Assembly (NCBI GenBank): GCA_964036045.1
Contig: OZ038378.1
Location: 199,640,001 to 199,704,000, forward strand
Direction: 5' to 3'
Source of the DNA: Eutreptiella sp. 'Long Island Sound 2002'
Taxonomy: Eukaryota; Protista; Euglenida
Length of the DNA: 64,000 nt
Made by a program: the position numbers and the translations under genes. Below the pieces are notes generated by a model that worked only from the letters and a program-made list of their open reading frames with translations, did no database searches and was not told the DNA's origin. Of the stretch, positions 2,620 through 27,559 are shown one piece after another (within the stretch, counting starts at the first letter, position 1; every line of letters begins with the position of its first letter).

Positions 2620-3290
2620 TCTCACTGCCAGTCCCAGTCCGACCCCACATGCACTCCCAGTTGGAGTCTTACACCCACACCTTCGTTGGCTCCCACTGCC
2701 AGTTCCGGTCCAAGTGCAACCCCCTCAGCCACCCCCAGTTGCATGCCTGTGCCCACGCCTTCATGCACTGCCACTGCAGGTTCCAGTCCCATTGCAACCC
2801 CCACATCCACTCCAAGTTGTTCAAGCACTCCCAATGCAATTTCTGCTCCCAGTTACCCCATGCCTACACCTTCATCTACTGCCACCGATAGTTCGAGCCC
2901 CATGTCTATTTGCAGTTGCACGCCGACGCCTACACCTTCAGATACTGCCACACCCGTAACCAATCCCAATGTAAGCCCCACTGCCACCCCCAGCCCCAGT
3001 CCCACATGGGCATTTCAACCCCCTGCCACTCCCAGTTCCAGTCGCAGAACAACTCCCACATCCAATCCCAGTTGCACACCCACACCAACACCTTCAAGCA
3101 CTGCCAGTGCCAGTTCCAGTCCCAGTACGACGCCCACGTCCACTTCTTTGTTCATGCGCTCCCAGTCCAACCCCCACATCCACTCCCAGTTGCACTCGCA
3201 CACAACACCTTCATCCACTGCCACTCCAACAAGCACTCCTAGCTCAAACCCCATGTCCACTCCCAGTTTGCACCCACATCTACGGAACAT
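2620..3290 (+). repeat. Degenerate Thr/Pro/Ser-rich (mucin/extensin-like) coding-type repeat
   Basis: ORF 2401-3315 has recurring TPTPSSTATASSSP motifs; no splice partners were found, so coding status is unproven. Confidence 0.55.
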
Positions 3291-3426
3291 TCAACCAAGG
3301 GGTGCCCACAGCTAGGCTGAATACCTGTCTGGAACCTGCATGCAAGAAACCTTGTGCACTTGCATACCCTGAAATGCATTCAAAAAGATGCAATGTTCAA
3401 ATAAGAAAGAAGAAATGGTCGGCATG

Positions 3427-3885
3427 CTGGTCCCACAGGAGCACCGAGGGTGATAATCTTCAGTGTTTGAAGAGGACTATGCAAACTGGCATTCCATCAG
3501 CAGCAGCAGGCATCCCAAATGGGTGTTGTCCCACTGCACATCATCTGCGTCACACAGTACTGCAATCTGCACTGCAACAAATCACCTTTGGCTCTCCCAG
3601 AAACTCACATTACAACCATATTCAAAGAAACAACAAAAACAGCAAACGTCACCTGCAAAATCATGAATGCTTCAACACATCCAGAGGCTGAATAGGATCA
3701 GAGGAACTTATCACCCCATTGGTCTCCCCTCCAAGCACCAAACAGCCTCCCAAACGGGCCAATGCAATGACATTTGGTGCCACTTTGTTCACATTTACAG
3801 CACATTGTCAGAAATTCCTTGATAGTATTGGTGCATCTGGCATCTGCCAAAATTTGGCACCAGAGTCGTGGAATGTCTTGAAGCC
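3427..3885 (-). pseudogene. Tandem duplicate of the selenoprotein last exon (degenerate) plus 3' UTR/SECIS
   Basis: 3885->3690 reads GFKTFHDSGAKFWQMPDAPILSRNF*QCAVNVNKVAPNV, a paralog of exon 8 with a stop, indels and no AG acceptor; 3427-3620 is nearly identical to 3915-4100. Confidence 0.85.
3480..3571 (-). promoter_or_regulatory. SECIS-like element, distal copy
   Basis: Core 3544->3496 is identical to the proximal SECIS-like core, offset 488 bp. Confidence 0.65.
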
Positions 3886-3967
3886 AAAGAAATTAGGAGG
3901 AAACGGTCTGGATGCTGGTCCCACAGGAGCACCGAGGGTGATAATCTGCAGTGTTTGAAGAGGACTA

Positions 3968-4059
3968 TGCAAACTGGCATTCCATCAGCAGCAGCAGGCA
4001 TCCCAAATGGGTGTTGTCCCACTGCACATCATCTGCGTCACAAGGTACTGCAATCTGCA
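3968..4059 (-). promoter_or_regulatory. SECIS-like element (type II) in the selenoprotein 3' UTR
   Basis: Minus strand: AUGAU-GUGCAGUGGGAC-AA-CACCCAUUUGGGAUG-CCUGCUGCUGC-UGAU. It has the UGAN/NGAN quartet, AA 12 nt above the core, a GCAGUGGG/CCUGCUGC helix, an apical mini-stem and a lower helix UGCAGAUUG/CAGUUUGCA. It lies ~115 nt after the stop codon. Confidence 0.75.
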
Positions 4060-4147
4060 CCACAACAAATCACCTTTGGCACCCACCAGAAACTCACATG
4101 CAAACCGTTTTTCAAACATAGGGAAATGGAAGCCTCAGATATTGTAA

Positions 4148-4410
4148 TTAGGCCTGCAAGATTCCTGACTCCTGCAACACATCTTCAGGCGCTGGGTGAT
4201 CCCCAGGGATCTTATCAGCCCATCCGTAGATAACATTGTCCCCATCCAGCACAAAAGTACCTCCCACACGAGTCACAGCTTCCAGGGTGTTGACTTTTGG
4301 AGCGATTTTGTTCATATTTGAGGCATATGTCCAGAACACATCCCTTGATAGCTTTGGTGCATCTGGCATCTCCCCAAATTTTGCACCAGAATCAAGGAAA
4401 GTCTTGAAAC
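4148..4410 (-). CDS. AhpC/TSA (PRXL2/SelU-like) selenoprotein, exon 8 (last)
   Basis: AG acceptor 4412-4411, phase 1; (G)FKTFLDSGAKFGEMP...TRVGGTFVLDGDNVIYGWADKIPGDHPAPEDVLQESGILQA*; the GGTFV...PGDH motif is typical of the AhpC-TSA_2 C-terminus. Confidence 0.92.
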
Positions 4411-7108: not shown

Positions 7109-7268
7109 CTACAGCCTTGTAAGCATCGAAATTTGCTGAGTCTTCCATAAACATCAATTCTCGTGGGACATCAGGATTGAGGTCCAAGAAAGCGTTTACG
7201 TTCTCAACGGTGCCCACGGAGATGAACATGGGTCCATTGATGTTTGCCTCCCGCAGAGACGGTTGGAC
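7109..7268 (-). CDS. Selenoprotein exon 7
   Basis: AG/GT-bounded, 160 nt; VQPSLREANINGPMFISVGTVENVNAFLDLNPDVPRELMFMEDSANFDAYKAV(G); phases match the neighbouring exons. Confidence 0.92.
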
Positions 7269-8710: not shown

Positions 8711-9168
8711 AATCCACACTTTATTGCGTGGCCCCTCAAGTTGGGGTTAGGGACTCACAATCCACGCTTTGTTGCGTGGCCCCTCGAGTTGGGGTTAGGG
8801 ACTCACAATCCACGCTTTGTTGCGTGGCCCCTCGAGTTGGGGTTACGGACTCACAATCCACGCTTTGTTGCGTGGCCCCTCGAGTTGGGGTTAGGGACTC
8901 ACAATCCACGCTTTGTTGCGTGGCCCCTCGAGTTGGGGTTAGGGACTCACAATCCACGCTTTGTTGTGTGGCCCCTCAAGTTGGGGTTACGGACTCACAA
9001 TCCACGCTTTGTTGCGTGGCCCCTCGAGTTGGGGTTAGGGGCTCACAATCCACGCTTTGTTGTGTGGCCCCTCAAGTTGGGGTTACGGACTCACAATCCA
9101 CACTTTGTTGCGTGGCCCCTCGAGTTGGGGTTAGGGGCTCACAATCCACGCTTTGTTGCGTGGCCCCC
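8711..9168 (+). repeat. 48-bp minisatellite, ~9.5 copies
   Basis: Unit AATCCACGCTTTGTTGCGTGGCCCCTCGAGTTGGGGTTAGGGACTCAC; contains a CCACGC/GCGTGG hairpin and, in most units, TTAGGG. Confidence 0.95.
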
Positions 9169-9376
9169 CTACAGACCATGGGAGCATGTTCCGCCTCATG
9201 TTTGGACTGACCAAAGCAACTCGGCCGCCACGCAAGATGAGGCAGAGGATGAGGTAGAAGTGTGTGTGTTGTGTTGCCAAAGGCACTCCACCGTGGCAGT
9301 TTGTGATGAGTGTAAGGAGCACTATTGCAATGAATGTATTGACACCCACACTTGTGGGACCAATGTTGTTTGTTAA
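9169..9376 (+). other. Cys/His-rich (B-box-like) zinc-finger coding remnant, probably the tail of a mobile-element ORF
   Basis: CVLCCQRHSTVAVCDECKEHYCNECIDTHTC after an acidic stretch, at the end of ORF 8618-9376. Confidence 0.45.
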
Positions 9377-10619
9377 GTACAATACAAATGACAGTTGGAG
9401 TTGCTGAATTCACAGATATTGCTTTATTATGCGAAGTGCTTTGTAGGGAAGGTGTGTAGTGCAATGTGGTCTACTTGGGGGGCTTCTCCATGAGAGGGTA
9501 AATTTGGGGCTGAAGTCGGGATAGTTAATAGAAAAGTAGCCGCAGTCGCAGCGGCCGAAAAGGCCCGTGATATCGCGGAACTCCCACAGGGGTTATTCGT
9601 ACTTGCTTCGCATGATGTGGTACATCCTCCTCAGCTGGTGCAATGTGCTCACTTGCCTTGGCAACACACCAGGGCAATCCTAGCCCCTTTATGAATGGGG
9701 TAGTCTCAGGTTTAACTCAGCATCCAACCACTCCTCCGTAGCAAGTGGCTGCAACTCAGGTTGGAGGTGGGCAAGGGCTGCCATGATGGCTATTGCCCAT
9801 GCTCCCCCGCACTAGCGGAGGCCCACAGAAGCGGCTTTTTGTTCACTGTTCACACGGATCATCATGCCGAGTAGGGGTGTGGCACCCGTAGGGGCAGCCC
9901 GAGGGAAATACTCCACCGCCACCTTCGGGTATTGCAGCCAGTCTTTGTGCTGCCCCCCCCTTTCAGTGCACCTCGAAGAAAGCCTTGCTAGTAGGGCCCT
10001 TGGTAATGGGTAGAACCTTCCCACAAGGGCACTGCCACTTCTTAGCGGCTATGTTCCGTTCCCGCCACCCAGCATCAGCATAGTAGGAGACACGGGGGGG
10101 GGGGGGGGTAGCCATAGGGGTTGTGGAGAATGCAAAACTCATAGTGAGGTGACTTGAAAACTGACAAACACAGAGAATTAGGAAATTGTTTCATGGTGCC
10201 CAAAACACCAACAAGCAAGTTGTGTCAAGCACATATGACCCGACCAAACAGACCATCCACACCAAACCACCAACACCCGGAGCTACTTGGGGGTGGGTTG
10301 TTGGTAACCCATTGCGTAACGATGACCCCCATGCCCAACCCCCCATGCCCAACCCTAATAGAGGTAGGACAACTGGGCCACCCGCAGTGGGGCTAGGTGC
10401 AAGCAAACAGTCCACACACCTTTTCAACTTTTTCAACCAAGACTCTTGTCTTTTTTGGACCACAACACTTGCCCCCCCCCCCCCCCCCCCCGCCTACCAG
10501 GTGAAATTTTGCTTGTTGCGGGAGAATTTTTCGCAACCCCCCCCCCCCCCCGGTGGGACCTTAGACAACCACCTACACCTCTTGTGAGGTGCACCCGGCC
10601 GCTACCTAGGGGGAGGGTG

Positions 10620-10950
10620 GGGGGGGGGGGGATGACACCTGATTGTGTTGTTGTCTGCACCTGGCGTTGCATCTTGGCCTCTCGCCACTTCCCCACTTCC
10701 CACCGCCCTTCCCTTGAACCCTTTCCCTCCCGAGGTAGCAGTGCCTGTCGACCTCTCACCACCTTGTGTCCTCCCTCGACCTACCTAGTCTATCCTGACC
10801 TCCCTATGTACCCTTCCTTGCCCTTGGCAGATTGTACCAATGAAGCCCTTGTACTTTCCTTGTTTCAATGCTCTGTGTCGGGTTCACACAAAGAGGGCAA
10901 CTACCCTTGCCATAGGCTAGGTGCGTCCCGGTGGACACCCCATACAGGCA
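10620..10950 (-). repeat. Diverged short copy of the retroelement 3'-terminal repeat
   Basis: Colinear similarity to 11450-11830 and 51597-51850 (GATGACACCTG...TGTCTGCA, CTCTCACCACC, TTGTACCAATGAAGCCC, TGTTTCA). Confidence 0.7.
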
Positions 10951-11445
10951 GTGGGGGATCCCATGCAACATTGGTCTTTGAAATACATTGACCTAGACAA
11001 TCATGCTCTTCTGAATGGTACTTTTGAAAATCACCGGAACCAGTTGTCCCGTGTACCCCACCCCCCTTGTCCTAATAGGGGTAGGGTTCTAGTTCAAGGG
11101 AGGGGGGGGGGGGGGGCAGGTGGCAGAAGCAGAGTGTTGCCGTGTTTGGACAAGCCCATGTTGCCGCACGGCAAGTACCACAGAACACATATTGCAGCCA
11201 ACGCTACCCCTGTACAACTACAAAAAGGTGTCCGACAGGCCACCATACACCCTAGAACACATGAGCACACGGAATTACAGTTACACCCACGCTGCGCACC
11301 CATATTGACCCTTCCTGCATGCTGCACAAAGCTACCAACCACATTTTCTATTGGATTGGAGCCTCAAAATCGATGTTTCCAAAAAAATGCGAAAACACGG
11401 GGTCACTGTGTTTGGAAAAGCCCATGTTAGGACAGGGGGGGGGGG

Positions 11446-14400
11446 TTTTGGCATGACGCCATGGTGTGATGATCTCGTCTGCAGCTGGCGGCGCCTACTG
11501 GCCGATCGCCATTTGCTGCCCTTCCCTTGGACCCTTTCCCTCCATAGGCGGTGGTGCCCATCAGCTTCTCACCACCCTTTGACCTTCCTCTTCCTCCTTG
11601 CCCTAACCTTCCCTCTCCCCTCCCCTTTCCCTTCCCTTGGCCTTTCCCTCTGTAGGCCACGGTGCCCATCGGCCTCACCACACTCCTTCCCTTCCCTTTC
11701 CCTTGGTCGGTTGTGCCAACGGAGCCCCCGGACTTGCCCTGTTTCACTTCTCTGCGTCGAGTCCACGCAGAGGAAGGCAAATGCCTTCGCCGTTGGCCAG
11801 GTGCGTCCAAGCGGCCATCCCAAGCCGGCGGTGAGGTACCTCTCCCCAACGGCGGCTGGTGGGCCCTGGGATGGCCACTTGCAGGGTCGTTTCCCCGACG
11901 GGGGCACATAACAACCTTTCTCCTCCAAGTTCCCGCGCTCAGTCCATCCTTTGGCGAGCGCAACACAAACCCCCTACCCTCTCCTTCATGCCTTTGCTGC
12001 GCGGACGGGGGTTGTGGGGGATGCGTGGGTGCACGGGGGAGTAGGATGTAGCGGGTGACGTGGGGTGGGCCTCTTACCGTCGCTGGCCGCCCACTTCGTT
12101 GCGCGACTCCCCGGACCACCTCAACATAGGAGCGAGTTGTTGTTGGGTTGACGGTGGTGTCCCGTGTTGGATGGAGGTGCGTAGGGCCCCTTGCTGGCCC
12201 CCTTCTCCCGGCTTGGTCCGGGCGCTTGACGACGTGGTGCGTCCCTTTTCTGGTTGAGTTGCTACGCGAGGGAAGGAGTCTCTCCCCTGCTCGCTTCTCA
12301 GTGCCAGCACGCTGGGACTTACTGCCGTGGTCACTCCCTTGAGAGCGCGGCCCCCGGTGGGCTTGCGTTGCCACATCGGGCATCTCGCTGAGGCCCCATT
12401 GGACCCCCCGAGAAGAACTCGGTGCACGTGTAGACTTCATTGTTTTGTTTTGGTCGGTGTTGGTCACCACCCTGGCTAAAAAAGTGCGGGGGTTGCCTTC
12501 CCCCTGCCTGTTGTTTGGCCTTGCCCCCTACTCCGCCGGCGAGAAAGCTCGCTGCGCGTTGTGGTAGCCGGGGCGCATCCAATGGAGACTGCGGCGCCGT
12601 CTCCATTGGGCATGGGTCCAGAGGCCCGTCCACGGCCGTACCTCAGACCACATCGTTGTGCCTTGTTGCTGTATCACTGGGGGCCGCGGCTCCCCAGTGT
12701 GAGTCTCGGTGGCTGGAGGATCTTCTCCTCCCCAGCAGAGCCATGTTGATGGTGTGAGACTCTCCTTTCCATCAGGCTTTTTGCTTTCATTGTTCTTCCT
12801 TCTCCTCCCGGCGCCGGGTTGCCCGTCCCTTGGGTTCCTGGGTCGCTTGGCGCCCGGTCTCAGTCCCTCTTGCTTCAAGGCCTAGGCCATGCCATGGTGC
12901 GTTCCGGGTCGCGCCTTTGTGCTCGGCACTGCGCTGAACAAGTTGCACCCCGTCACCTTGACGCCGTCGGAACTGTGCGACCGTGCGCTTCCACGCCCTC
13001 TTGTCACCCGCGGGTGGGGCTTGTCCGCTTCTCACTTCGGTTCCATCTTCTACTCCTTGTACAGCCGGATGCCTACTTGCTCGGCAATCACGTTTGCCCT
13101 GTGCAAGTTTTGCATCAACCTGGTTGTGTCCTCCACTGTGAAGTTGATGCCCTCCCCGATGATGAACACCTCCGGCTCCCAACGTCTCACCTCCGGCACC
13201 CATACCGTTGAGGCTAGCACTCGCACTTTGTACACCTGGTCTGGTGCCAATAAGTACATGTTGCTTCCTGCCTCGGGGTAGTCGGAGAACCACCCTCTCC
13301 TCCTTTTCTCCGCGAGGATCCGGTCCGCTTGGATGGCGCGGACGTGGTGCGTGTGCCACCGGAACTTCTCATGGAACAAGAGGCGGCGGGTCCGTTGCGT
13401 TCCCGACCCCGGTGGCGGTGCGCCCTTGGGTGTACCCTCACCGTGGCTAGCCCCCATTCCACTCGCATGTTCGGAACGACCGGGCCTTTTGCTTCCCCAC
13501 AAGAAAGACCAAAAACCCTCTCCATCGCCCTCCGTTTCTGGGTTTTTGGCACTTGGTGGCGCTTCCTCCGGGGCTGTTTGCCCCGCCGAACTTGAGCTGT
13601 TGCAGAAATTGGATCGAAAGTATGTGGGGTTGAACTGGTAGTTGGGTGGTTCCTCCGCCGGCCTTGGCGGTGTCACCCCGGGCGCACTTTTCCATCCCTC
13701 GTAGCCGGAGGTCAACCTTTTGAACAGGTGGGTGGCTTTGGCAATGTTGTTCATGTTCTTGTCCGGATGTAACCGCAACACCCACTTTTTGTATGCGGCC
13801 TTCACTTCATCCATGGTGGGTGCACTACCCACTCCAATCTGTTCAAGAAAGCTCCATCCTTCAAAACCCGGGGGCAGCACCTCAACGGGCTCAACTACCT
13901 CCGGGACCACCTTCTTCTTGTCCACTTTTACTCGGCGCATCCCTCCCACTAACAACACTTGCACTTTGTCCTTGTAGATCTCCTCCAACACCCCCTTGTG
14001 GCCCTCCAACTCCGGTTGTCTCATCCCTACTAGCCTCACCCCATTCCATAGTTCAAATGTTTCTTCCTGCCCTCCCATCTCTCCTTCTTCACTCCTTTCC
14101 TCCTTTCTTCCGTGCGGTTCATTGTCTCCCGCCACCCCGCGTCCTTTTGTTTCTTCCCCGTGCTGTTGTTGTTGGGCAGCTTTTGAGTCCTCGGCGCCTC
14201 CCATGTGCTCCACCTCTTGCACCCTGACCCTATCCAATGACACCAAAACCCTTCTGCCACAGTCCATTCGGAGTCTTACTTTTCCTTGTTCCTCGATGAT
14301 GCTTTCAACCTCACCTGTCTTCCCCTCCAGTTCCATCTTTTTCTTCATGCCTGTTAGTGCTACTCTTCCCCCGAGAACAATGCGATGGCCATCCACTCCA

Positions 14401-17400
14401 ACCACTTCCGGTCTCTCGGAGTCACTTTGCTGTGGTTCGGCCCGTGCTTGTGGCTTGGGGGGTTGTTCCTCCAGCGCCACCCCTGCCTTCCTCGCTTTGC
14501 TGCGTTGTTCTCTCCTCCTCTGCTTGTGCCTCTCTCTTTCCTCCCGCAACCATTTGGCTGGCCTTGCCTTTCTGCACCTACACTGGAACACCCTGTTGCT
14601 GCGGAACACCTTCTTCGCCTGGGAGACAGTGACCCCAGCACACTTCAAGTGCATCCAGTGCCCCTGGCTGCACCTCACTGCTCCCTCCTTGGCCCTCAAC
14701 GGTCTGCAGCATAGCCCACATGCGTGCTTGGGACCACGCTTTTGCGTCCAAGCTTCGGGTCCAACCGTGCTCGCTGTCCCGTTGCTGCTCGTGCTGCTAT
14801 CACTCTCCTCATTGTTGTCGGGCTTGGTGTTCTCCTTTTCCTTAGGTGTGCTTCCTGCTCCCAACCATTTGGTCCACCACCTGTTGTTTCCCATGTCCAT
14901 ACAACCACCATCCTCGGCCTCCACGAGGACCACCGGCACTTCCTCCTGCTCCCTCCAAACCGGGTGAGGGTCATCATCATCCCAAACTCCAGCAAGATGT
15001 TCGTGATACCGGTGATCCACTCCCGGTTTCTTTCGGCGGATTGCGGCACATCTGTTTGCCACCTCCATGCCCAAGACGGACATTGTGTAGGCCTTTAGAC
15101 CCCCCTTCAGTGGGGCACACGCCACTTCATCCGCTGGAGAGGTCCAACTTTGCACCACTCCAACTGCTGGGCCTCCTTCCGGTATAATTGACCATAGCGT
15201 TTGGCCAATTGTGTTGAGGGTGCACACGTCCAAGGCTGATAGCACCGGCACATGTCCTGGATGCGTGTGTATCCAACCAACCAATTTTCCTCCCAAGGAT
15301 GCGCCCCAACTGACCGCCTCTGTGAGCGCCTCATCTCCCACTGCACAGTGGTGGCTTGTTTGTACGTCGTGTCTTGGTATGTGTAGACCCCCTACTTTGA
15401 CCCCATTTTCGGTCCTTGTCCCCCACAACAATCCCATGGTCTCTTTCCCTTGGCTTGCCGCTTCCCGGACTGCTTGGTTCCATGTCTCCAATATGTCCTT
15501 GGGGAGCTCCACTTGCCATTCACCCTTTCTTGGTTGTGGCTTTGTTCGTCTTGATTTCGCCTCCTCCGAGGTCACCTTCTCTTCTGTCGGCCCCCTCTCT
15601 TCGGCTTCCTTCAACCCGTGGTTTCCCACTCCTGTTGGGTGTTGTACCTTGCTGCGGTCCTTGTTCTTTGTCGCTTTTGGACGTGGTTGTTCGTCCAACA
15701 CCCCCTTCTCCACCCCATCCACTGCCACTTCTCGAGATGGTTCTGGCTCTCCCTGGCCGGGGGCATTTCTTCTCTCCTCCTGCCTTGGTTGTTTCTTTGT
15801 CTCTTCTTCTTCCACCACGTCTAGCTCTGGGTTCTCCTGGCTTTGGCCTCCCGCTTCCTCTTTCCTCAGCCCTTGCAACCATCTCAAGATTGATATGTCA
15901 CTGTTGGTGTCACTATCTTCTCCATGTCCTCCGCTTTCTTCACCTTGCTGCTCATCCTCTTGCCGCTGTGGTGGATATTGTTCCTTGTGGCTTTGGATTT
16001 CGCTCTTCTCCTTTTGCTTGTGGTCTTCTTCCTTCTCCTCCTTCTCCCCCACCTCTAGCCCCACTTGTGGTGATGGACGAGGCCCTCCATGGTCTTCGGT
16101 GTGGCTCTTCCTCTGTTGCCTTTGTTGCTCCACGGTCGCCTCATCGTCCACCACCTCCGGCCGCAAGTCCTTGTGTCCCTCCATTTGCCCTCCTTCGCCC
16201 CTTATCTTCAAGCCTTGCAGCCATGTCAAGATTGATACGTCACTGTCGGTGTCACCGTCTTCCACTTCTTTTGTTCCTTTGTCGTCTTGGCTCTCCCTCT
16301 CCTGCCGCTTCGCTTGTTCTTCCTTTTGTTGTCTCTCAACATCATTTGTCAGGCTTTTGTTGGTGCTTGCAGCCTCCGTGGTCTCGGCGCACCCAACTTT
16401 GCGGTTGTCGCTTTGCGTTGGCGCCACCAACGGTGGTTCCCTCAAGTCCACAACCACCACCGTCTCCCGCCACACACCACAGTTCTTCATCTCCTCTTCC
16501 TCTCCGACGATCTCAGTTGTTCTCACCCCTTGTGGGTGCGGATTTTTGGCTTCCCTCCTTTGGGGTTCCAGCCCGCCTTCCGGCGGTGTCCACACTTTCG
16601 GTGGCGGTGGTACGTGCTCAAACGGGCAGCTCTTTCTCCGACACCTCCACCCGTACCAACATCTCTTCTTTCTCCTCTCTTCTTTTGAGATCTCCTTCCT
16701 TACCCACCGTTGCATCCGTCCAAACCACACGTGCATCTCCCCCATGGTGATGTCTTGTCCACCCCACCACACTCGCAAGAACTTGCCCCATTGTTTCTTT
16801 TGCTCGTGTGTCCCATAGCCTCGCTGTGTGGCCGTTTTGGTGATGGTTTGGATCGCCTCCTTGAATAATCGCAAAACTGAGCACAACCTCAATGCTCTGA
16901 TGTATTGCCCTGTCAATACTCCCAACCTTTGGGCGTCCAAGATCATGCTATCCCTCACTGGATATCGCCTTATTTTTATGGGATAGTCCTTCTCTCTCCA
17001 ATGCACTCCGGTTTCAAACTTGGTGCGCCCTTTCTCATCCTCTCTCCACCACAAGTCAGCCCCCAAGAAGACAAGGTGGCCTCCATCAGCGGCTCTTCGG
17101 ACCGTCCTTTTGAGTTTGTATGCTTCCTCCCCAGGGACGACGCCGGTCAAGGAAAACATGTCATCCACAAAGCGATAGTTGTGTTCCACTTGCTCCGGCC
17201 TCCTTCCTTCTTCTTCCGCGAACCTCTTCTCCGTCCCATAACACGCCAAGTTCGCCAAGAAGACGGCACATTTCAGTCCCATTCCGAAACCTTTCTTTTG
17301 CTTGTACACCACACCCCCTTGCTTGACATATCCGTTGTTTAGTACCCACTGCACCATCTCCTTCACTTCTCTCTTGCTCCAGCTGTCAGCTTGGGGTTCC

Positions 17401-18360
17401 TCCCCCTTTCGTCCAAGCCACCAACCGTCTTTTCCGACCCGTAGCTCTTCCTCCTCTTCCCCATCCTTGTCCTCCTTTGCAGTTTGTTATTCCCAGTCCC
17501 AAGCCTCCTCGATTGCCTCCAACACGTTTGTGGAGACGTAGTCTTGATCCATGCTTGGGTACATCGCCACGAAATCTCCCACTTCCGCCGAAGCTTTACA
17601 TTGCGCTATCAATTCCTCCTCAAATCGGACCGGCTGCGTGAACTCCTCCACACTATCTATCCACCACACCCTCTTCGGGTTCCCTTTCTTCCTCCATTCC
17701 ACATCCTTGCGTTTCAAGCTTCTGCATACTTGCGTTAATGCTTGCACCAAGACCTCTCCGACTCCTGCTATGCTTGCTTCCGGCTTGTCTTTCTCTTCTT
17801 CGGTTTGTTTCCTTGCTCCACTAATCCATCGTATGTTTTCTTTCTGGGCCTTCCATATTCCATATATGTACGGCAACCTTCTGTTGACTGCGAGGAGCCT
17901 CTCCGCGTGGTAGTCTTCGTGGCGTTGTAGGATGGCCTCCTCACTTTCCGGCGCGACCTCAAACCCATCACTTTGGAGGTATATGTCCCTCCGGTGCTTG
18001 TATAGTCGCTTACATCCGCCAACCCAGTTGTGCGGACCCCTATCCTCCTTCAAGAATGCAAAATCTTTCTTCATGTCCTTCACTTTTTGCATCCCTTCCG
18101 TCCCTTGTGGCAACGTGTGAACCTCCTTGTCCACTTGCCACATCACTTTTTTCTTGATCAAGTCTTTCCACCCTTCGTAGTCCTCTCTTTGCCCTGCTCC
18201 ACTTCGTACTTTGCACTCGATGTACTCCGTTAACCCCTCTTCCAAGTTGTGGAGCACCTTCCATTCTGGCTCTTGCTGCTTGAATTTGTATCCTTTTTTG
18301 TCCACGTCTTCCATTATTGGACTATTGAAGCCCGCCATCTCTGTCACGACTGTCATGACA
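11446..18360 (-). mobile_element. Penelope-like retroelement (Naiad/Chlamys-type RT), apparently 5'-truncated, in intron 6 of the selenoprotein gene
   Basis: RT motifs KGYKFK, DFAFLKEDRGPHNWVGGCKRLY, LPYIYGIWK, GDFVAMYPSM, YKQKKGFGMG, YRFVDD and GVLTGQYIRA; bounded by G11 (11435-11445) and G15 (18361-18375). Confidence 0.85.
13050..18356 (-). pseudogene. PLE polyprotein: RT + CCCH + JAMM/MPN + PHD + 2x KOW/SH3-like + DnaJ + unknown domain; one in-frame TAA at 17487-17489
   Basis: ORFs 17487-18443 and 13050-17366 are in the same frame and separated only by a TAA plus 40 open codons; domain motifs read directly from the translation. Confidence 0.85.
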
Positions 18361-19574
18361 GGGGGGGGGGGGGGGAGCAAGTCCTCTCTAATACTAGGCA
18401 GATGGCCACCAGGACTAGCAGACGAATGGTGAACCCTTTCCAATAATCCAATGAGCGGGATAAGGTGGCACTCCTCTTTCCATGGGTTTGCACATAAACC
18501 ACGTCACGTTACCTTCTCGACCGCAAAAGCTGTGGTCGGAAGAACAATAATATGCGGTCAACTTGTGGAGAAAAGGCCGGGCTTGCGCTGACACGCTCAG
18601 GGGAGGGGAGGGGTAAAGAGCCCCAGATACAATATGAGCCCTCCCAAGGCCCCACCACACGATTGTGGAATGATGATGGTGACTGTTCAGCTCGCAGCCC
18701 CTCAGATGACCGGTTGAGACCACCGGCTGTGATTGCCATCCCATGCTGTCATCCATCCCCAGATGTCTACCCGACACATCAGATGAGCTCCCACCCCAGC
18801 CAATGACAACCACTACCATTCTACCCCACGTGGCCCACATTTCATGATCTTTTTTTCAAAAGCATCCATACTTTCCGATACCTTTCCGTTTTTCACAGAT
18901 ATGCCACAGATGGTGTTGCATTCTTTGACACAACAGCTTTGTTTTTCTGGAAGCAGGAGCCTACACACTCACCCAAATAGGGGATGCAGAAACCCATGGG
19001 CCCCACATCGCTGCCACTCCCTGAATAACCTCACGCACAACATTTTGATTCCCACGGGCATGAGGATGCCAAAGATGCAGAGGATGCACGTGCACCATTT
19101 GCACTGTGTCAAGGAGAAGGATGCTGAGGGTATTGTAAGACATGGCACAACAGACCAGCTGGGCATCGAGGCATAGGCAGGACGGCCCTGAAGGATTAAT
19201 ACAAGTTGATTTCTGCCCTGCCCAACAAATGCACAAACCCAAAAAACAAGAGGCACTACACACGGCAAATTTTCAAATCATCCAGTGATACATCCATTTT
19301 GTCACCAGCAACGACAAGACATATGAACCTCCGACCGCAGTAGGCAGTTTATGGACCAAAAATTGGCCATTAGCCACCGGCAGGTTGTGGTCAACCACCG
19401 GCGGGCAGTGATTCACCGCTGGCCCAGAGCGCGGTCATGAAGGGGCGGTCCTTCGTGGAAAAAAAAAACCTAATTTGTTTCTAAAAGGACCACCCTCGGG
19501 GCATAGGGTCAGAATGAAACGCGTGAATCCTGGGTTGCCCCGGCCTGCCCTGCACCTTGCCGACTCAGGCACAC

Positions 19575-19664
19575 CTTGAGCCACTGGGCCACAAGGTCCC
19601 AACAGTAAACTCAGCCTAAATGGCGCAAGAACACGACCACGCTCTTGCCTGAGTCCCCAATGAC
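19575..19664 (-). CDS. Selenoprotein exon 6 containing the Sec codon (UxxC)
   Basis: CAG|GTC...AAG|GTGTGC, 90 nt; VIGDSGKSVVVFLRHLG-TGA-VYCWDLVAQWLK; TGA at 19613-19611 sits at the first redox-Cys position. Confidence 0.92.
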
Positions 19665-20959
19665 CTGCAGCAGAACACACAATCGACGTCCGGGTTGCAT
19701 GGAGCTTTTCAAGCATTTTTGGCGCGCAGCCTGTACCTTCGGTCAGCACATGACGCATGAGAAAGCACCGTTTCTAAGAGGTGGTGGTAGGAGAGGTCCA
19801 GCCCTTCTGTACCAACCCAAAAAAAAGAAATTGAGTTACCCACCCGGCGGAGGTGCCGACACAACAAAAGGCGCTCTACCGGGGAACAGCACTTCAGCAC
19901 AAAAGTGTCCACCTCCTGCAAGGTGATGCTACCACGCCAGCTGAGTCATTCATCACGGAGACACGAAACTGAAAGTCGGCAGCAGCGTTTACGTCCATGA
20001 TGGCAGGCTGGCTCGCTGTGTGGAGGTTGAGATTACAGTGGCTGGCTCTGTGGAGGTTGGGGGCTGCGGTGGCTGGCTGTGGGGAGGGTTGCAGTGGCTG
20101 GCTGTGTTGAAGCCTTGGCTGGAGTGGTGGGCTGTGTGGAGGTTAAAGCGTTGGTGCTACTGGTACTGATATTGCTGCTGGTACTGGCACCTTTTCTTTT
20201 TGGAAAAGAAAAATGAAAGCTTAGTCAATGTTTTCTTAGTCTGCTCCCACGTTGTGTGCTGTCCATTCTTTGACTGGTCCTGCTGCGTGTTCATGGTACC
20301 CGCATCGCACGCATCAACAATCGTCAGCTGGCATTGCAAACAAACAATGAAATTGGCAGAACAATGAGGTCTGAGCACAGGGGAAGAGGATTCCAAAACC
20401 TGTGGCTCGAAGACTCACCCACCTTAGAAAGGATTGTTGGGTGCAGTTGGGTGCCAGCATGGAACCCAGTCCGAGTCACGACGCGCAAAGATGTTTCCGT
20501 TTTCTCCGGGAACAAATTTGGGTGGAATCAGCTTGGTCAGAAACGTGGGGGGGAGATGGGTTTGAAATTATGACTCAAACACACTGCCTTGTTCATCAAT
20601 ATTGGCCAGTGTTTCTGAAGTTTCTCAGTGAGGAGGAGGACGAGGGCTTTTGTTCGTTGGCAGGGGGGGGGGGGCTTTCCCCATACATGAGGTATGATCG
20701 CAGTGGGAACAGAGGACCAACAGGAGGTATCCGCAGTTCGAAAAACTTGGTTCTATGGCAGTATGAGCTCAGCCCAAAGAACACAAAAGAAAATGCATTG
20801 TTCACATTGAAGTACCAATGTCTGCCACCCACCATGCACTTGACGCTGCTGCTGTCATTGCTGGAAAACCTGACTGGGCACACCAGCTTGGTGACCCAAA
20901 TCCACATATATGCACACAAAAGGCTGCTCCCACCCTAGACCCCTGCAGAGAGTTGTAAC

Positions 20960-21072
20960 CTGTGCAACCGTCTTACGCTGCCCATCAGCATCAGTCAATT
21001 GCAGCGACCGCAGGAGCCTGGCATCCACGTCCTGCTCATTGATGGTCACAGTACTGCCTTCACAACCACAAT
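20960..21072 (-). CDS. Selenoprotein exon 5
   Basis: AG/GT-bounded, 113 nt; (D)CGCEGSTVTINEQDVDARLLRSLQLTDADGQRKTVAQ. Confidence 0.88.
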
Positions 21073-21397
21073 CTTAAACAGAAGCGTGGGAGACAAGCAA
21101 CAGGAATGGCCTTTGGGGAGGTCGGGAGTGGCTTGAGATGCAATGGGTCCATGTTTGCAGCTGCAGAAGAGCACAGTGCATTGCATTGTGTGGGGCTGGT
21201 GAACAACCTGTCTGCAGTCACGCTTCTCACAGGTAAATCTGCTGAATTTAGGCAAATGAGAGCCATGACGCCATGTTTGTGTGGAACTGCTCGCCCACAC
21301 CCACCCACACCCCCACACCCCAAAAAAGGGGTACCCGGGTACGGGGGGCTAAAGGGGTCAAAAACGAAAAATTCATTGGGGGATCATTTTCTCTCCT

Positions 21398-21516
21398 AAA
21401 ATGATGATTTTACAAGGGGTTGGACATCCGGTACCATACCTTGGGGTATCGTACGCGAATGACCCCAAAAAAGGGGGGGTATATGGCGTACGCACCTACG
21501 CTTGATCTAACAACCC
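21398..21516 (+). repeat. Dispersed repeat module AAAATGATGATTTTACAAGGGG...TTGATCTAACAACC
   Basis: Related copies at ~27228-27350, 29606-29740, 36367-36500 and 46685-46815. Confidence 0.85.
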
Positions 21517-22326
21517 TCTGTTAGGTTATTTGTGCATTTTGATGTGGTGAATTCAAAAATGCAAGAGTTTAGCCTCAACAAGACGATATGTTGGAGAATC
21601 GGCCAATTTGTGTCAAAACAGTCACATTTTCCCCTCCGACTAAACTGGCTGTGATCAGTGTGGTCGTGGACATCAGGGCAGTAAATGGGGAAATTCTCTA
21701 GCATATTGTCTTGTTGAGCCGAAACTCTTGCATTTTTGAATTCAGCACATCAAGATGCACAAAATTTATACACCCCCTTTTTTTCGTCATTGGAACAACC
21801 TGTGGAAGCACCGGTCCGACCACCTTGAAAACCTTGCATGCAGTGTAGACCAAGGTTTACAAGCAGATGCCGAAACGCCCAAGTTCAGCGGCCCGGGGCG
21901 GAAAAATATGGTCACGTACCCCCCCATGACCCATACCTTTCCGAAACGGCCTTTTCTTGGAGATTTCAAAAAATTATAAAACACCCCCCCCCCTTCCAGA
22001 ACGATATTTTTGAGAAAAACGGCGAGAACTGAAAAAACTCCGACTTTGCATCGGAATCACCCCCCCCAGCAAAACGCCCATATATATACATATATATTAT
22101 ATTTTACGTACATATATTTTGTTAACACTCGCATGACACTTCACCGGGCTTAGAGGGCCCCCTCCCCGGGGTTGCAATGGACCACCAGCCCTGATCCACC
22201 GTGGAGGAGCTCAAGGTCCATTAGATTCTGATCCATCGATGGTTGGGCAAATGGGTGCGTCTCTGCGGACAAAATGGTCATGACTGCACATGCCTTCGCA
22301 GCCCAAAGCACTCAGGCAAAGCACAC

Positions 22327-22398
22327 CCTCAACGCTGCCTGTCGTTGCTGCCATTGCAATCTTGTGGTCAGCGATTGCCACATCATTGAGGTGCAGAC
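22327..22398 (-). CDS. Selenoprotein exon 4 (end of presequence)
   Basis: AG/GT-bounded, 72 nt, phase 1/1; (G)LHLNDVAIADHKIAMAATTGSVE. Confidence 0.8.
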
Positions 22399-22531
22399 CT
22401 GAAAGGCATGCAGCAATGGAGGCAGTTGCAGCCGAGCCCCAGGACCGCAACCCTTCGCGAATACTTTTGGTGATCACAATGGTAAAAATGCAGTGCAGGA
22501 TTTTTTTTGGAGGGGGGGGGGGTCTGTTGTC

Positions 22532-22759
22532 AGGGGTGTATTGGAAGGGGAGGGGAGCCAGAATGTCAGCATGTCAGGAGCAGTTACAAAGGCAGCTGGA
22601 GGGTAGTGGCAGGGCCTCCTTTGGAAGCAGTTACTGTGGGCCGCAAAAGCTGTTATGATTGGGCTGTTGGGAAAGTGAGAGACCGGGTGGGCTGCTGGAT
22701 CAGCCCACACAAAGGGGGTGGGGTGGGATACCTCTCGCCCTCCCTGGATTGCACTCCCT
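22532..22759 (+). mobile_element. Degenerate MITE-like element (same family as 40215-40426)
   Basis: Begins AGGGGTGTATTGGAAGGGG; interior is colinear with the 40215 copy. Confidence 0.55.
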
Positions 22760-24293
22760 CTCCAACCAGAACTATCCCAGTCACTATGATGTGTTACCTC
22801 CACCCAAATGCGCATTGCACTTGAACATGCAACTCCCAGCTGTCTGTAACGGGAGGTGCACTTGAGTGGCTTCAGTTAATGAGGGGGCCCTTGTTTAACG
22901 CGCTATTTTTATGCCAAATATCCCGAGTTTAGCACCAGCACCCTCCCCGAGGCAAACCACCCAAGCAGACCAGAATCAAAACCAAACCCTTCCCTTTAGA
23001 GCACACAACATAAGACCAAATTTGTGAATTCCACTTGCTCAACACATATGACATGTATTGCGCCTAATAAACAGCTTTGTCCTCCCAAGTGTGGGTGGCA
23101 ATACGCTCAGCACAAGATTTTTTTGGTTCAGACCCGGGTAAGCTGGCAAAGCCCTTTTGAGGGAACGTTTGCCTGGCACGCCCACCACGCCGAGCATCCA
23201 AATCAATGTTCTGGCCGTCTATCCCAATGCTTTACCCCCATCATATGGAGCTTGGAGTGCCCTTTTCACAATTGCACAAGCACAATTCATTCATGCATGG
23301 TTGCAAGAAGTGGTGGCAAGGAAGTATGATGACAATATTAACCTCTCTTGGAATCATTCCTTGCTCTCTTGGGCACTAAAAGAAGTGCCCAAATCCCATT
23401 GCGCCAGGCTGGGTCAGGAAATCCCATACAAAAACATGCCCTCCAACGGTTGGAAGTGGAACAGTGACCATTGAAACTTTCTCCAGCACACCCGTTGCAT
23501 GCCCGCCATGCTAACGTTCCCTCCTTAGCAGGCGGTACGCGAGAGAATTTTCCGAATAAGGGATCACAGCTTTCCGTGCTACGATTGTCCTAAAGCTCAG
23601 TGTGGTAGCGGACATGACACGTAGTTAGGATGAGCTCAGCACAAAACTGGTATTGCAATCACCACAAAGTGTTGTGGTGCGCTTTTTGGCAGCACACGGC
23701 AAAAATGTCAACCTCATCCCCTCGGAGGGCGGTATTTCTATTATTTCTGGCCATTTTGGCCGCTTTCGGAGGGCGGTATTTTAGTTATTTTTGGCCATTT
23801 TGGCCGTTTTCGGAGGTCATCTTGCGGGGCAGCTGAGTTGCTTGCAATGTCTTCCCACGGGGGGTGACAGACCAAAAAATGGGACTGCAACTGAAATGGC
23901 TACATAACCCCTGCCTTCTCGGGATCTCCAACATGAAGAGGAATAAAGCACCAGAAGGTTGAACGAACGCAATCAAAAGTGGCTCCATAACCCCTGCCTT
24001 CTCAGAGTCCCCGAAGCAGCAAGGAATCACACCGGTTGCTTATTATAATATTGGTTGGGGGCATTTCAGCCTAAAACGACACCGGCACGCGTCCAGTGTA
24101 CTAACCCCCCCCCCCCCCCCCGTTGCGCAGGCACCGCCCAAGGCACCAACATTGAAGGTTTCACAGCATAGTGGTGACTGCACAAGGCGGTGCTTGCGCA
24201 AGGGGAAGCAGGGGCTCACATTCCCTCTGTATCACATCTCCCATGCAGAGCACTGAGATCCTTATCTCACATTGACCCCATAACTTCGCATAC

Positions 24294-24387
24294 CGTCCCA
24301 AACTGAAGGCTGACTGCGTTTCTGCATGATTTTCATAATGAAGGCAGCCACAGGCAGCAGGATGACCAGACTCTTCAACCAGATGCC
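24294..24387 (-). CDS. Selenoprotein exon 3 (second TM / stop-transfer segment)
   Basis: TAG|GGC...GAC G|GTATGC, 94 nt; GIWLKSLVILLPVAAFIMKIMQKRSQPSVWD; hydrophobic helix followed by basic residues. Confidence 0.82.
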
Positions 24388-24693
24388 CTAAGAGATAAAT
24401 CATGTGCAGCAAAGAGGGCACACTAGCAATCCAAAAAATCTGGGGAACAGTGTAGGAACGGTGTACATTTTCTGACATGTCTGTGATGGATACCAGGGTT
24501 GCGAGGAACTATGCAGGAACCTGCATGCTTGGGGGCTCAGTGCAGTGTCGGTGCAAAACTTTCGGGCAACAGTGCAGGAACAGTGCAACGCAAGGGGAGG
24601 AACGGTGCTATTCTGCCTGCTGCAGGAGAAGCAAGCACGACCAACAGACAAGCGAAGCCCAGTCACAACCTTCACACACTGCTGAAAGCAGAC

Positions 24694-24849
24694 CTGAAAA
24701 GCTGCGGCGGCGGTTTCAGTGGCCCCAGGAGCTGCATGCTGGGCTGTGATGCCCCTGGGAACGGAACGCACACCAACGACTGGTCTCCTTGTTTGCATTC
24801 CACCATCCTGCGTGCCTCTGGCCATCGCTCCAACTGCTGGCAGAGGAAT
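24694..24849 (-). CDS. Selenoprotein exon 2 (transit-peptide-like)
   Basis: AG/GT-bounded, 156 nt; IPLPAVGAMARGTQDGGMQTRRPVVGVRSVPRGITAQHAAPGATETAAAAFQ. Confidence 0.8.
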
Positions 24850-25144
24850 CTGTTGAATACAGCAGCAATAGTCAACGGTCCCCATTTGCAAAAAGGGCGC
24901 AAGACGCAGGCACCCCGAAACGAAACGAACGAAACATTCCATTCACAATGCGCCTCAACACCGCATCACTGCACCACACCTCGTCCCACAGAGCATCCAT
25001 GTGGGTGTACACAGCCAAGGTCCAAGGCTGACAATACACTCTACTCCTCATTTTTCCCCCAGCCCTGTCTAACCCACCCATTCAGTGACCGCGAATCCCC
25101 TCGACCCTGGAGGGAGACGAAGCAGTGGAAGGAGAGGGGGATAC

Positions 25145-25315
25145 CTGGGTTGTTGCTCTTGGCGCCACCATCAAATTGGTCTCATTTGAAGCGTTGGGGA
25201 TCAAAAAAAACGCAACCCCCAGGCCAACAACACCAATGAGACAACCTGAGAGCCACGCCTCAACTCCAGGTGTTTGTGCATGGGTGGAGGCTAATAAAGG
25301 CCTCCTTTCAATCAT
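25145..25315 (-). CDS. Selenoprotein exon 1 (signal peptide / first TM); whole CDS is 1119 nt, 372 aa
   Basis: MIERRPLLASTHAQTPGVEAWLSGCLIGVVGLGVAFFLIPNASNETNLMVAPRATTQ|GTATCC; candidate trans-splice acceptor CTTTACCCTCAG ~17 nt upstream of the ATG. Confidence 0.8.
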
Positions 25316-25919
25316 GATATGATTTGCACGTCTGAGGGTAAAGACCACAACACAGCAACATGCAAAGATGGTAAATAAATTGCTTTGCTTCATTGCAAAT
25401 GTGCAGACACAACCACCCTGCTGCCTCATGACTTATTGTATTGTCATGGTTTTTCATGATCCTGTACATACTACCCCCCCCTCGAGGTTTTGGGCTCTTG
25501 ATGAATGCCAAGCCCCTTTCCCCCGCCTTTGTCCTCCCCTCCCTCACCAGGGAAGAGGGTCCACGCCAAGTGACGCCCCCAGCCCGCCCTCCAGGGAGCC
25601 GCACTACCACTGTACACGCACATTGTGTGGCACAGAAATTGCAGCAGAAAACGAAATAACAAAGCACAAGAAACATTGGTGTGCAGAGATTATCAAGGTG
25701 AAAACACAATGACAGGTGAAAGCTGGTGTGCCAACCATAAGAAAGGCATGCGTGCGTTCAATGAGCTGCCAACGTCATGAAACTTACTCCTTGAGCGGCT
25801 CGAGATAAAATTCTATTGCCTATCGGCAAGGCGCCTCCAAGAGGGAGGGAGTGCAGTCAGTCAATCACCCACCCCCGTCCAAACACCCAAATAGGGGGAA
25901 AAAACCAAAGAAAGAGGGT

Positions 25920-26771: not shown

Positions 26772-27070
26772 AATTCTATTGCCTTTGGCAAGGCACCTGG
26801 AAGAGAGGCTAACAGACAGCCAATTAGTCAGGCAAGCAGCCAGCAAGCAGTCAGTCAGGCATTTAGTCGGACAGCAAGCAGCTAGATAGGCAGGCAGAAA
26901 CACACAGTCTGGCTTTTTTCAGTGGGAGACTACAACTAGAAACAGTGGGGAAGGAGTGCCCTATGGTAACAATAAGTGGTTGAGCGGTAGAATACTCGCC
27001 CCACATCCCGCACAACGCTGGTTCGAATCTTGGCCGGCGACCATTGGCACGCGCCGGTCGGCTCATGAGC
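26772..27070 (+). mobile_element. ~300-bp non-autonomous element: terminal hairpin + (CAGT/CAGG)n + tRNA-like module
   Basis: AATTCTATTGCCTTTGGCAAGGCACC start; B-box GGTTCGAATC at 27020-27029; colinear reverse copy at 45870-46122. Confidence 0.7.
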
Positions 27071-27559
27071 TTTTTTTTACCCCACCCTGGTTCGACTCCT
27101 TCAAAGCACAGACTTTTGACCTCCCTCCTCCCAACTCCCCCCCCCCCCCGAAAATGTGGTATCCATTTTCAGCGGGATAGAGGCCTCAAAATCAAAAAAT
27201 CCATTGGGGGATCGTTTTGTCGGGCAAAATAATGATTATACAAGGGGTTGGACCTCCAATATCATGCCTTGGGGTATGCTACGCGACCCCAAAAAGGGGG
27301 AGTGTATGGTGTCCGTGACTACGCTTGATCTAACAACCTCTTTTCAAGGTGACCTCCATTTTTTTTTGTTGGATGACTCCAAAGGTTCATAAAGTACTCA
27401 AGACATATGATACAGTGGATCCCCGCAATGCGGGGCACGTGGCAAAGACCTAGAGTTCATATGCGGATACCACACAGCTCTGCGATAGGTGACCGCCACG
27501 CCAGTCGGAACATGTAGAGTGAGTAGTTGCATAGAATATGTGTCCGTTGGCCGGGCTGA

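Follow-up and report, generated by a model that had tools for sequence, protein, structure and literature searches.

Introduction

Can a selenoenzyme reach a secondary green plastid by way of the endoplasmic reticulum (ER) and the Golgi? Cytosolic ribosomes are the only site at which selenoproteins are made, and to our knowledge very few of these proteins have been assigned to plastids. In Euglena gracilis, the class-I type of plastid-targeting presequence was reportedly described by Durnford and Gray in 2006. The question was raised by a gene on the minus strand of a 64,000-nucleotide stretch of Eutreptiella sp. 'Long Island Sound 2002' (assembly GCA_964036045.1, contig OZ038378.1, positions 199,640,001 to 199,704,000). 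This whole stretch is called the window, and all positions are counted from its first letter. An initial annotation of the window had read exons 1-4 of the gene as a class-I presequence in front of a selenoprotein. Our analysis led to a similar reading. The product is likely a 372-residue (372-aa) precursor made of a class-I euglenid plastid presequence of about 160 aa and a PRXL2/SelU-type enzyme with a U-x-x-C motif, in which U is selenocysteine (Sec), and it would be delivered to the plastid. The gene is regarded as a well-supported candidate for a chloroplast selenoprotein.

Transcript structure and completeness of the N-terminus

A six-frame translation was made. The peptides named in the initial annotation were all found on the minus strand, in short pieces of open reading frame (ORF) between 25315 and 22327, in the exons to which they had been assigned. 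Public sequencing runs were then compared with the 6,000 nucleotides (nt) at 19500-25499 of the window. These were the RNA-type runs X1 and X8, the estuary metatranscriptome X3 and the DNA-type run X12. A contig of X1 (1281 nt), a near-identical contig of X3 and a partial contig of X8 matched the window with zero mismatches. They joined six blocks, 25332-25145, 24849-24693, 24386-24292, 22396-22327, 21072-20958 and 19662-19573, five of which were listed for X3. In the DNA-type run X12 the whole stretch was covered, and none of the exon joints was present.

The complete mRNA was recovered by searches with natural sequences. Single exons, or database sequences split at the UGA, were used as queries in all searches, and the exon-joined model was used only for local analysis of frame, hydropathy and composition. 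The uninterrupted window ORF at 24400-24942, whose region 32-83 corresponds to exon 2, was used as a protein-database query and returned P0001. This 219-aa JGI protein is equal to residues 1-219 of the spliced product and stops at the UGA. The whole mRNA was present in L001, a complementary DNA (cDNA) contig of 2,046 nt from JGI sample 3300042017, with the AUG at nt 28. When its one TGA was read through, the ORF of L001 was identical to the eight-exon model at every residue. The precursor has 372 aa, with a single in-frame UGA at aa 220. Exon 7 was placed by a loose end of a transcript contig that matched 7237-7266, and exon 8 was placed by reading frame and acceptor and matched L001. With exon borders set using the alignment cut offsets, all seven introns were GT-AG. 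Chance ORF fragments were ruled out because the exons are spliced together in cDNA. The joining of exons 1-4 to exon 5, on which the initial annotation had made its proposal depend, was seen in the X1, X3 and X8 contigs and in L001. The exons are as follows.

25145..25332, minus strand: exon 1; spliced-leader acceptor at 25332/25331, start codon at 25315-25313; aa 1-57; n-region, predicted hydrophobic signal domain and start of the transit-peptide-like region; 100% identical to L001 nt 11-198
24694..24849, minus strand: exon 2; aa 58-109; core of the transit-peptide-like region; joints in the contigs and L001
24294..24387, minus strand: exon 3; aa 110-140; hydrophobic domain 2 and basic flank; joints and GT-AG
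22327..22398, minus strand: exon 4; aa 141-164 and the first base of codon 165; linker with AMAATTG
20960..21072, minus strand: exon 5; aa 165-202; first exon of the conserved thioredoxin-fold protein; joints and ortholog alignment
19575..19664, minus strand: exon 6; in-frame TGA at 19611-19613 (aa 220), motif U-V-Y-C
7109..7268, minus strand: exon 7; behind a 12.3-kb intron; L001 nt 722-888
3248..4410, minus strand: exon 8; last 87 codons, stop TAA at 4150-4148 and at least 900 nt of 3' untranslated region (UTR); 100% identical to L001 nt 881-2046

The 5' end of L001 is ATTTTTTTTCG, a spliced-leader tail. The same sequence is the spliced-leader tail of E. gracilis and the mark of a complete 5' end (10.1101/573709). 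Beyond 25332, the reverse-complemented sequence read ...TCTGAGTGTCTATTTCTTTTC in X8 and ATTTTTTTTC in X1, which is the euglenid spliced leader, and the stretch in X8 was longer than that in L001. Since L001 and X8 begin with the spliced leader, the N-terminus is complete. The 5' UTR of 16 nt is free of AUG, the A of the first AUG lies at 25315, and the last base of exon 4 is 22327. The gene is a single expressed nuclear gene of a marine euglenid, and its mRNA has eight exons and is trans-spliced with the spliced leader.

Two hydrophobic domains and a transit-like region

Residues 1 to about 163 precede the conserved fold and form an added presequence. In the Kyte-Doolittle profile only two strong peaks appeared in the entire 372-aa protein. 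The first peak is the domain listed below.

25199..25255, minus strand: hydrophobic domain 1, aa 21-39 (putative signal-peptide h-region or first transmembrane segment, TM1); 19-aa Kyte-Doolittle mean 2.28

The 13-aa mean of domain 1 peaked at 2.72 with its centre at aa 33, and GCLIGVVGLGVAFFLI corresponds to aa 24-39. Domain 2, the putative stop-transfer segment (aa 111-130, 24325-24384), peaked at 2.67 with its centre at aa 121. It is followed directly on its C-terminal side by the basic flank QKRSQ (24310-24324), and LVILLPVAAFIMKIMQKRSQ (aa 116-135) runs from within this second transmembrane segment (TM2) through the flank. Among 375 E. gracilis plastid proteins whose N-termini were verified by the spliced leader, the signal domain was placed at residues 9-60 and the stop-transfer domain at 97-130 (10.1101/573709). 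Both peaks, at aa 33 and aa 121, fell within these ranges. When residues 1-165 were shuffled, only 7 of 20,000 shuffles reached a 13-aa mean of at least 2.5 in both the 9-60 and the 97-130 window. The hydrophobic peaks are therefore more than chance clustering.

The 71 residues between the peaks (aa 40-110) differed in composition from the mature part, as listed here.

S+T+A: 34% in aa 40-110, 18% in the mature part
P: 9.9% in aa 40-110, 4.9% in the mature part
R: 8.5% in aa 40-110, 3.9% in the mature part
D+E: 4.2% in aa 40-110, 13.7% in the mature part
K: 0% in aa 40-110, 4.9% in the mature part
L+I+F: 7% in aa 40-110, 17.6% in the mature part

The net charge of this stretch was +3. The enriched set (S, T, A, P, R and H) accounted for 38 of its 71 residues against 58 of 207 in the mature part (p=1.5e-4). 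The depleted set (D/E, K, L/I/F and Y) accounted for 19 of 71 against 100 of 207 (p=0.002). Nine of the 11 composition trends reported for the transit-like regions of E. gracilis were followed, the two exceptions being G and M.

These results agreed with most of what the initial annotation had described in exons 1-4. The hydrophobic signal, the transit-like region rich in A, T and R, and the second transmembrane segment followed by basic residues were each recovered. The transit-like region was also rich in S and P, poor in acids and free of K. The transmembrane and signal prediction that it had proposed was carried out here by Kyte-Doolittle analysis, which gave two domains in the expected ranges. 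Its estimate of about 165 aa before the thioredoxin fold was also correct, as the block conserved with homologs begins with EDCGC at aa 164-168. The match to the euglenid class-I architecture was supported at the level of sequence, with a domain spacing slightly longer than the 60±8 residues of the class-I rule. A third hydrophobic domain, as in class IB presequences for the thylakoid lumen (PMC2920757), was absent. Class IB was ruled out on this ground, which left class IA. A mitochondrial presequence was ruled out by the 19-aa hydrophobic segment that directly follows the N-terminus. Two N-glycosylation sequons (NAS and NET, 25178-25195) lie just after domain 1, on the predicted ER-lumen side, and are not conserved in the orthologs.

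Selenocysteine and enzyme family

The TGA at 19611-19613 aligned with the Cys of E. gracilis and diatom homologs, and with the TGA of two other contigs, L004 and L002. It lies at the start of the domain within a U-V-Y-C (U-x-x-C) redox motif, in the context G-U-V-Y-C-W. The approximately 151-152 aa beyond the UGA matched Pfam AhpC-TSA_2 (PF13911) with 29.5 bits, against a gathering cut-off of 27. When Pfam was searched exon by exon, exons 1-5 gave no match and exon 8 gave a weak AhpC-TSA_2 match, so that the family could be recognised clearly only from the pieces of natural cDNA. A profile of 13 homologs matched almost the entire prostamide/PGF synthase PRXL2B structure 9us9 (E=7e-8). In the Atlas, the nearest cluster of the E. 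gracilis ortholog was peroxiredoxin-like 2C (PRXL2C-like). By these profile and structure matches, the mature part is a SelU/PRXL2-type AhpC-TSA_2 protein of the thioredoxin fold. It shares with SelU/PRXL2 proteins (PF13911; 9us9) the fold and the C/U-x-x-C motif. In contrast to them, the clade of the window gene is divergent, its C-terminal piece barely passes the Pfam cut-off, and a long organelle presequence precedes its fold. Ostreococcus and Thalassiosira are known to have SelU in the Sec form (PMC2375036). The selenoprotein itself is a member of this known algal class, and its likeness to the published algal SelU genes is one of family level.

A hairpin resembling a selenocysteine insertion sequence (SECIS) was located in the 3' UTR at about 3975-4035. 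The minimum-energy fold of 3955-4050 gave a stem flanked by AUGA on the 5' side and GA on the 3' side, with unpaired AA near the tip. Its folding energy did not stand above that of shuffled sequences. The 3' UTR also holds a second, decayed copy of the last exon and UTR, which is 76% identical (4418-3897 against 3885-3409). Both SECIS-like copies sit on the mature mRNA, as the 3' UTR of the cDNA spans 900 nt or more and extends to 3248.

Euglenid orthologs and the boundary block

Exon 8 was searched against 1.84 billion representative proteins, and 83 matches were obtained. Many of them were fragments of 127-150 aa that start just after the active site, as expected when gene callers stop at a Sec UGA. 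When residues 166-219 of P0001 were used as a homolog query, only P0001 itself was returned. A scan of metagenome contigs with exon 8 gave 368 pattern matches, none of which was confirmed.

One of the full-length matches, P0018 (375 aa), is EukProt EP00667_P015117, which is E. gracilis EG_transcript_15704. The initial annotation had pointed to E. gracilis orthologs for a comparison of Sec with Cys, and this protein provided it. The two-domain layout was the same, and Cys stood in place of Sec. Its hydrophobic peaks lie at aa 27 and aa 118, with a basic flank after the second. The 70 aa between the domains contained 33% S+T+A, 10% P, 8.6% R, 4.3% D+E and no K, with a net charge of +3. The two precursors are of similar length (375 and 372 aa) and have in common the two hydrophobic domains, the ..MA..G..EDCGC block, which reads ..MATTVGEDCGC in E. 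gracilis, and the fold. Identity was 29-33% over the N-terminal approximately 220 aa and 47% over the exon 8 part. At the active site, E. gracilis has Cys (A-C-P-Y-C-W), whereas the window gene has Sec (G-U-V-Y-C-W).

The closest match to exon 8 was P0004, which is carried by Logan contigs that include L004. The L004 cDNA starts with ATTTTTTTTCG and encodes 377 aa with the TGA at codon 222 (G-U-P-Y-C-W). Its hydrophobic peaks lie at aa 40 and aa 135, and its boundary is AMAAATGATEDCGC. Between the domains, 76 aa contained 38% S+T+A, 12% P, 2.6% D+E and no K, with a net charge of +4. By sequence comparison, the class-I layout is shared by E. gracilis and two marine transcripts of euglenid type. 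We therefore argue that it is functional and old. The euglenid orthologs retained the presequence, and the homologs outside euglenids had a short extension in its place or none.

Ebenezer et al. 2019 (PMC6366073) predicted a plastid proteome with SignalP/PrediSI and ChloroP, and EG_transcript_15704 appears in it as 'hypothetical protein | chloroplastic' and as lacking a known homolog. This listing counts as an independent in-silico call in favour of the plastid. Pfam gave no match on the full protein at E<=0.01. Through the clade profile, it can now be assigned to the PRXL2/AhpC-TSA_2 family. The experimental plastid proteome lists another 'AhpC/TSA-like unknown', ID 33265. When the C-terminal half of EG_transcript_15704 was used as a query, no E. 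gracilis fragment that could be 33265 was found.

The linker encoded by exon 4 holds the block AMAATTG (aa 155-161, 22337-22357), and E164 marks the start of the conserved mature part. In the three-way euglenid alignment of the window gene, L004 and E. gracilis, Met156-Ala157, Gly161 and EDCGC were invariant, and EDCGC runs into exon 5. The first residues were alike in the two Sec forms (..RxPLLAST.AQ). The initial annotation had taken an AMAATTG-type end as a typical feature of such presequences. The block is present and conserved in the three orthologs, but an established euglenid targeting motif of this kind was not found in the literature read on euglenid presequences. From the alignment, the block belongs to the orthologs of this gene and is not an established general euglenid motif. 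A separate small exon, preceded by a phase-0 intron, holds Met156 (22352-22354), which may be a relic of the original start codon, with the presequence exons added upstream. Gain of presequences by exon shuffling has been proposed for E. gracilis (PMC2920757).

Homologs of algae with red plastids

A signal peptide followed by Phe at position +1 (ASAFAP-type) is the plastid signal of diatoms and their relatives. Many of the non-euglenid homologs carried an extra extension of about 45-60 aa, with a signal peptide and then Phe, and no second hydrophobic domain. We took these to be diatom-type proteins of red-plastid algae on the basis of this signal. In the full-length non-euglenid homologs the active site lies about 50 aa after the start of the conserved part, and some proteins begin at that start. 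The junctions of the Phe type were SDA|F (P0105, from the diatom Aulacoseira subarctica), TDA|F, TSA|F, VKA|F and VNS|F, and P0101 and P0026 were also of this type. Aulacoseira subarctica is the one species named among them, and the rest are JGI or Logan matches. These homologs belong to the same clade, with 35-40% identity to the mature domain of E. gracilis and 42-52% to exon 8 of the window gene. Their extension is short and lacks a second hydrophobic domain, as expected for four-membrane plastids, whereas the window gene has about 160 aa and two domains.

Sec was also indicated in this group. P0068 on the JGI contig L002 (330-1235) has a signal peptide with VKA|FAP, and its codon 111, which falls at the equivalent active-site position, is a TGA that was called as Trp. 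P0103 also shows Trp at the active-site position. P0068/L002 and P0103 are probably hidden selenoproteins with the plastid-type signal of a red-plastid alga. Judged from these signals, the protein clade seems to be addressed to plastids in two unrelated import systems.

Weighing of alternative explanations

Several observations weigh against delivery of a selenoenzyme to the plastid by a class-I presequence. The topology signals are those of any type-I membrane protein, and no clean -3/-1 signal-peptidase site was seen after domain 1. The class-I rule of hydrophobic domains 60±8 residues apart (cited in PMC6242988), which was taken second-hand, was exceeded by a gap of about 69-76 aa in all three orthologs. 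In the window gene the gap was 71-76 aa by the Kyte-Doolittle boundaries and about 69-70 aa with wider transmembrane calls. In L004 the centre of the second domain, at aa 135, falls slightly beyond the 97-130 range. The hairpin of the 3' UTR gave no SECIS match in Rfam, either at the gathering cut-off or at E<=10. The number 15704 is absent from the experimental E. gracilis plastid proteome tables of 1,345 proteins, if shared transcript numbering is assumed. Because that proteome is incomplete and the shared numbering is an assumption, the absence was taken as no support and not as counter-evidence.

Some of these points would suit a resident type-I protein of the ER, the Golgi or another endomembrane, with domain 2 as a permanent anchor and the selenoenzyme domain in the cytosol, never in the plastid. 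The signal domain, the lumenal stretch of about 70 aa and the transmembrane segment with its K/R flank give exactly a type-I topology. The two sequons after domain 1, the slightly long spacing and the absence from the experimental tables also fit such a protein. However, the lumenal stretch is transit-like, K-free and acid-poor in all three orthologs, the red-plastid homologs have plastid-type signals without an anchor, and a published pipeline predicts the E. gracilis ortholog to be chloroplastic. We consider an endomembrane protein unlikely. A position in the plastid outside the stroma, with the protein anchored in an envelope membrane or held in the intermembrane space, perhaps serving the import or envelope machinery as a redox partner, appears somewhat less likely still. 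The 35-aa stretch from domain 2 to the fold, with M-A..G..EDCGC, is unusually conserved for a region that is cut off, and no cleavage site could be predicted. In the published class-I model, however, the anchor is removed along with the presequence. A third hydrophobic domain like that of lumen-targeted class IB proteins is absent, and the diatom-type homologs have no anchor at all.

Dual localisation was regarded as very improbable. An extra short cytosolic form would start at Met156, through internal initiation or through alternative addition of the spliced leader before exon 4. Met156-Ala157 is invariant in the three orthologs while the surrounding linker is variable, the residue has its own small exon after a phase-0 intron, and presequence gain at such introns by exon shuffling is the mode proposed for E. 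gracilis. In contrast, none of the transcript contigs begins with exon 4 or was reported to have a spliced-leader loose end at that point, although contigs cannot show minor forms. Delivery to the plastid by a class-I presequence is preferred over these readings.

Repeats in and near the gene

Intron 6 (7269-19574) is 12.3 kb long, and splicing across it was shown by the cDNA. Repeats of very high copy number occur in introns 3 and 4 (21300-21500, 23100-23700 and 23900-24100), where the summed X12 contig depth was up to 58,000 against about 7 for the exons. Parts of these repeats appeared in RNA-type contigs with mismatches and were probably transcribed from other copies. At 26960-27110, two stretches have the tRNA T-arm-like sequence GGTTCGA(A/C)TC. 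ARAGORN found no tRNA in the window, and these stretches may be fragments of a tRNA-derived (SINE-like) repeat.

Proposed route

We infer the path of the protein from the E. gracilis scheme (PMC6242988, PMC2920757), and its cleavage site, destination and activity are likewise proposals. Domain 1 would act as a signal peptide and take the nascent chain to the ER. The stretch rich in Ser, Thr, Ala, Pro and Arg would enter the ER lumen, and domain 2 with its C-terminal K/R would stop the transfer, so that the remaining chain would be made on the cytosolic face. In this cytosolic part the UGA would be decoded as Sec, aided by the putative SECIS in the 3' UTR. The anchor would already be in place when the ribosome reaches the UGA, which would keep the U-x-x-C domain out of the ER lumen throughout. 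Vesicles would carry the precursor via the Golgi to the outermost plastid membrane, and the transit-like region would then drive import through the inner two membranes. The presequence might be cut off close to the conserved AMAATTG..EDCGC boundary, and the imported enzyme could act as a thiol/selenol oxidoreductase or a peroxidase-like protein.

Relation to known systems and significance

The window gene shares with the class-I presequences of E. gracilis (PMC6242988, PMC2920757, 10.1101/573709) the spliced leader, the signal domain, the transit-like region and the stop-transfer domain. The presequence length of about 160 aa lies within the 61-233 aa reported for E. gracilis. It differs in a spacing of about 70 aa over 60±8, in a marine eutreptialean host and in a cargo that is a selenoprotein. 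Among primary green algae, the Sec-type glutathione peroxidases CrGPxA/B of Chlamydomonas reinhardtii are predicted to be organellar or chloroplastic (PMC3095285). Like the window gene, they are nuclear-encoded selenoproteins translated in the cytosol and predicted for plastid import. They belong to a different enzyme family and enter a primary plastid post-translationally with a simple transit peptide, whereas for the window gene a co-translational route is proposed that passes through the ER and Golgi and leads to a secondary plastid with three membranes. None of the 24 selenoproteins of Ostreococcus tauri was assigned to the chloroplast (PMC8834552).

The initial annotation had called a Sec-containing redox protein sent via the ER and Golgi into a secondary green plastid little documented. 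In the literature searched, no paper was found that deals with the selenoproteins of euglenids or with selenoproteins targeted to the plastids of secondary algae. Predicted chloroplast selenoproteins as such have precedents, for example the Sec-type glutathione peroxidases of Chlamydomonas (PMC3095285). The presequence type, the enzyme family, the algal Sec forms and the plastid prediction of the E. gracilis ortholog, as an unknown protein, are already known. What is new is a gene and cDNA structure verified for a marine euglenid, the link of a class-I presequence to a selenoprotein, the pair of Sec and Cys orthologs, and a hint of plastid-addressed Sec forms in red-plastid algae too. The E. 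gracilis chloroplastic protein without a known homolog has now been given a family. The gene offers a concrete, cDNA-verified candidate for a selenoenzyme sent via the ER and Golgi into a three-membrane green plastid. Its Cys ortholog in the tractable E. gracilis opens the way to localisation and to comparison of Sec with Cys. Gene callers hide such proteins, either by splitting them at the UGA or by reading the UGA as Trp.

We tentatively put forward a wider possibility, to which we give slightly less than even weight. Sec-using PRXL2/SelU-type enzymes might be a regular, unrecognised part of the complex plastids of marine algae, delivered by the class-I route in euglenids and by the signal peptide and Phe in red-plastid algae, with Cys in freshwater Euglena. 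The euglenid anchor would then shield the Sec domain from the oxidising ER lumen until import. If this is true, the plastid redox chemistry of these algae would be selenium-dependent.

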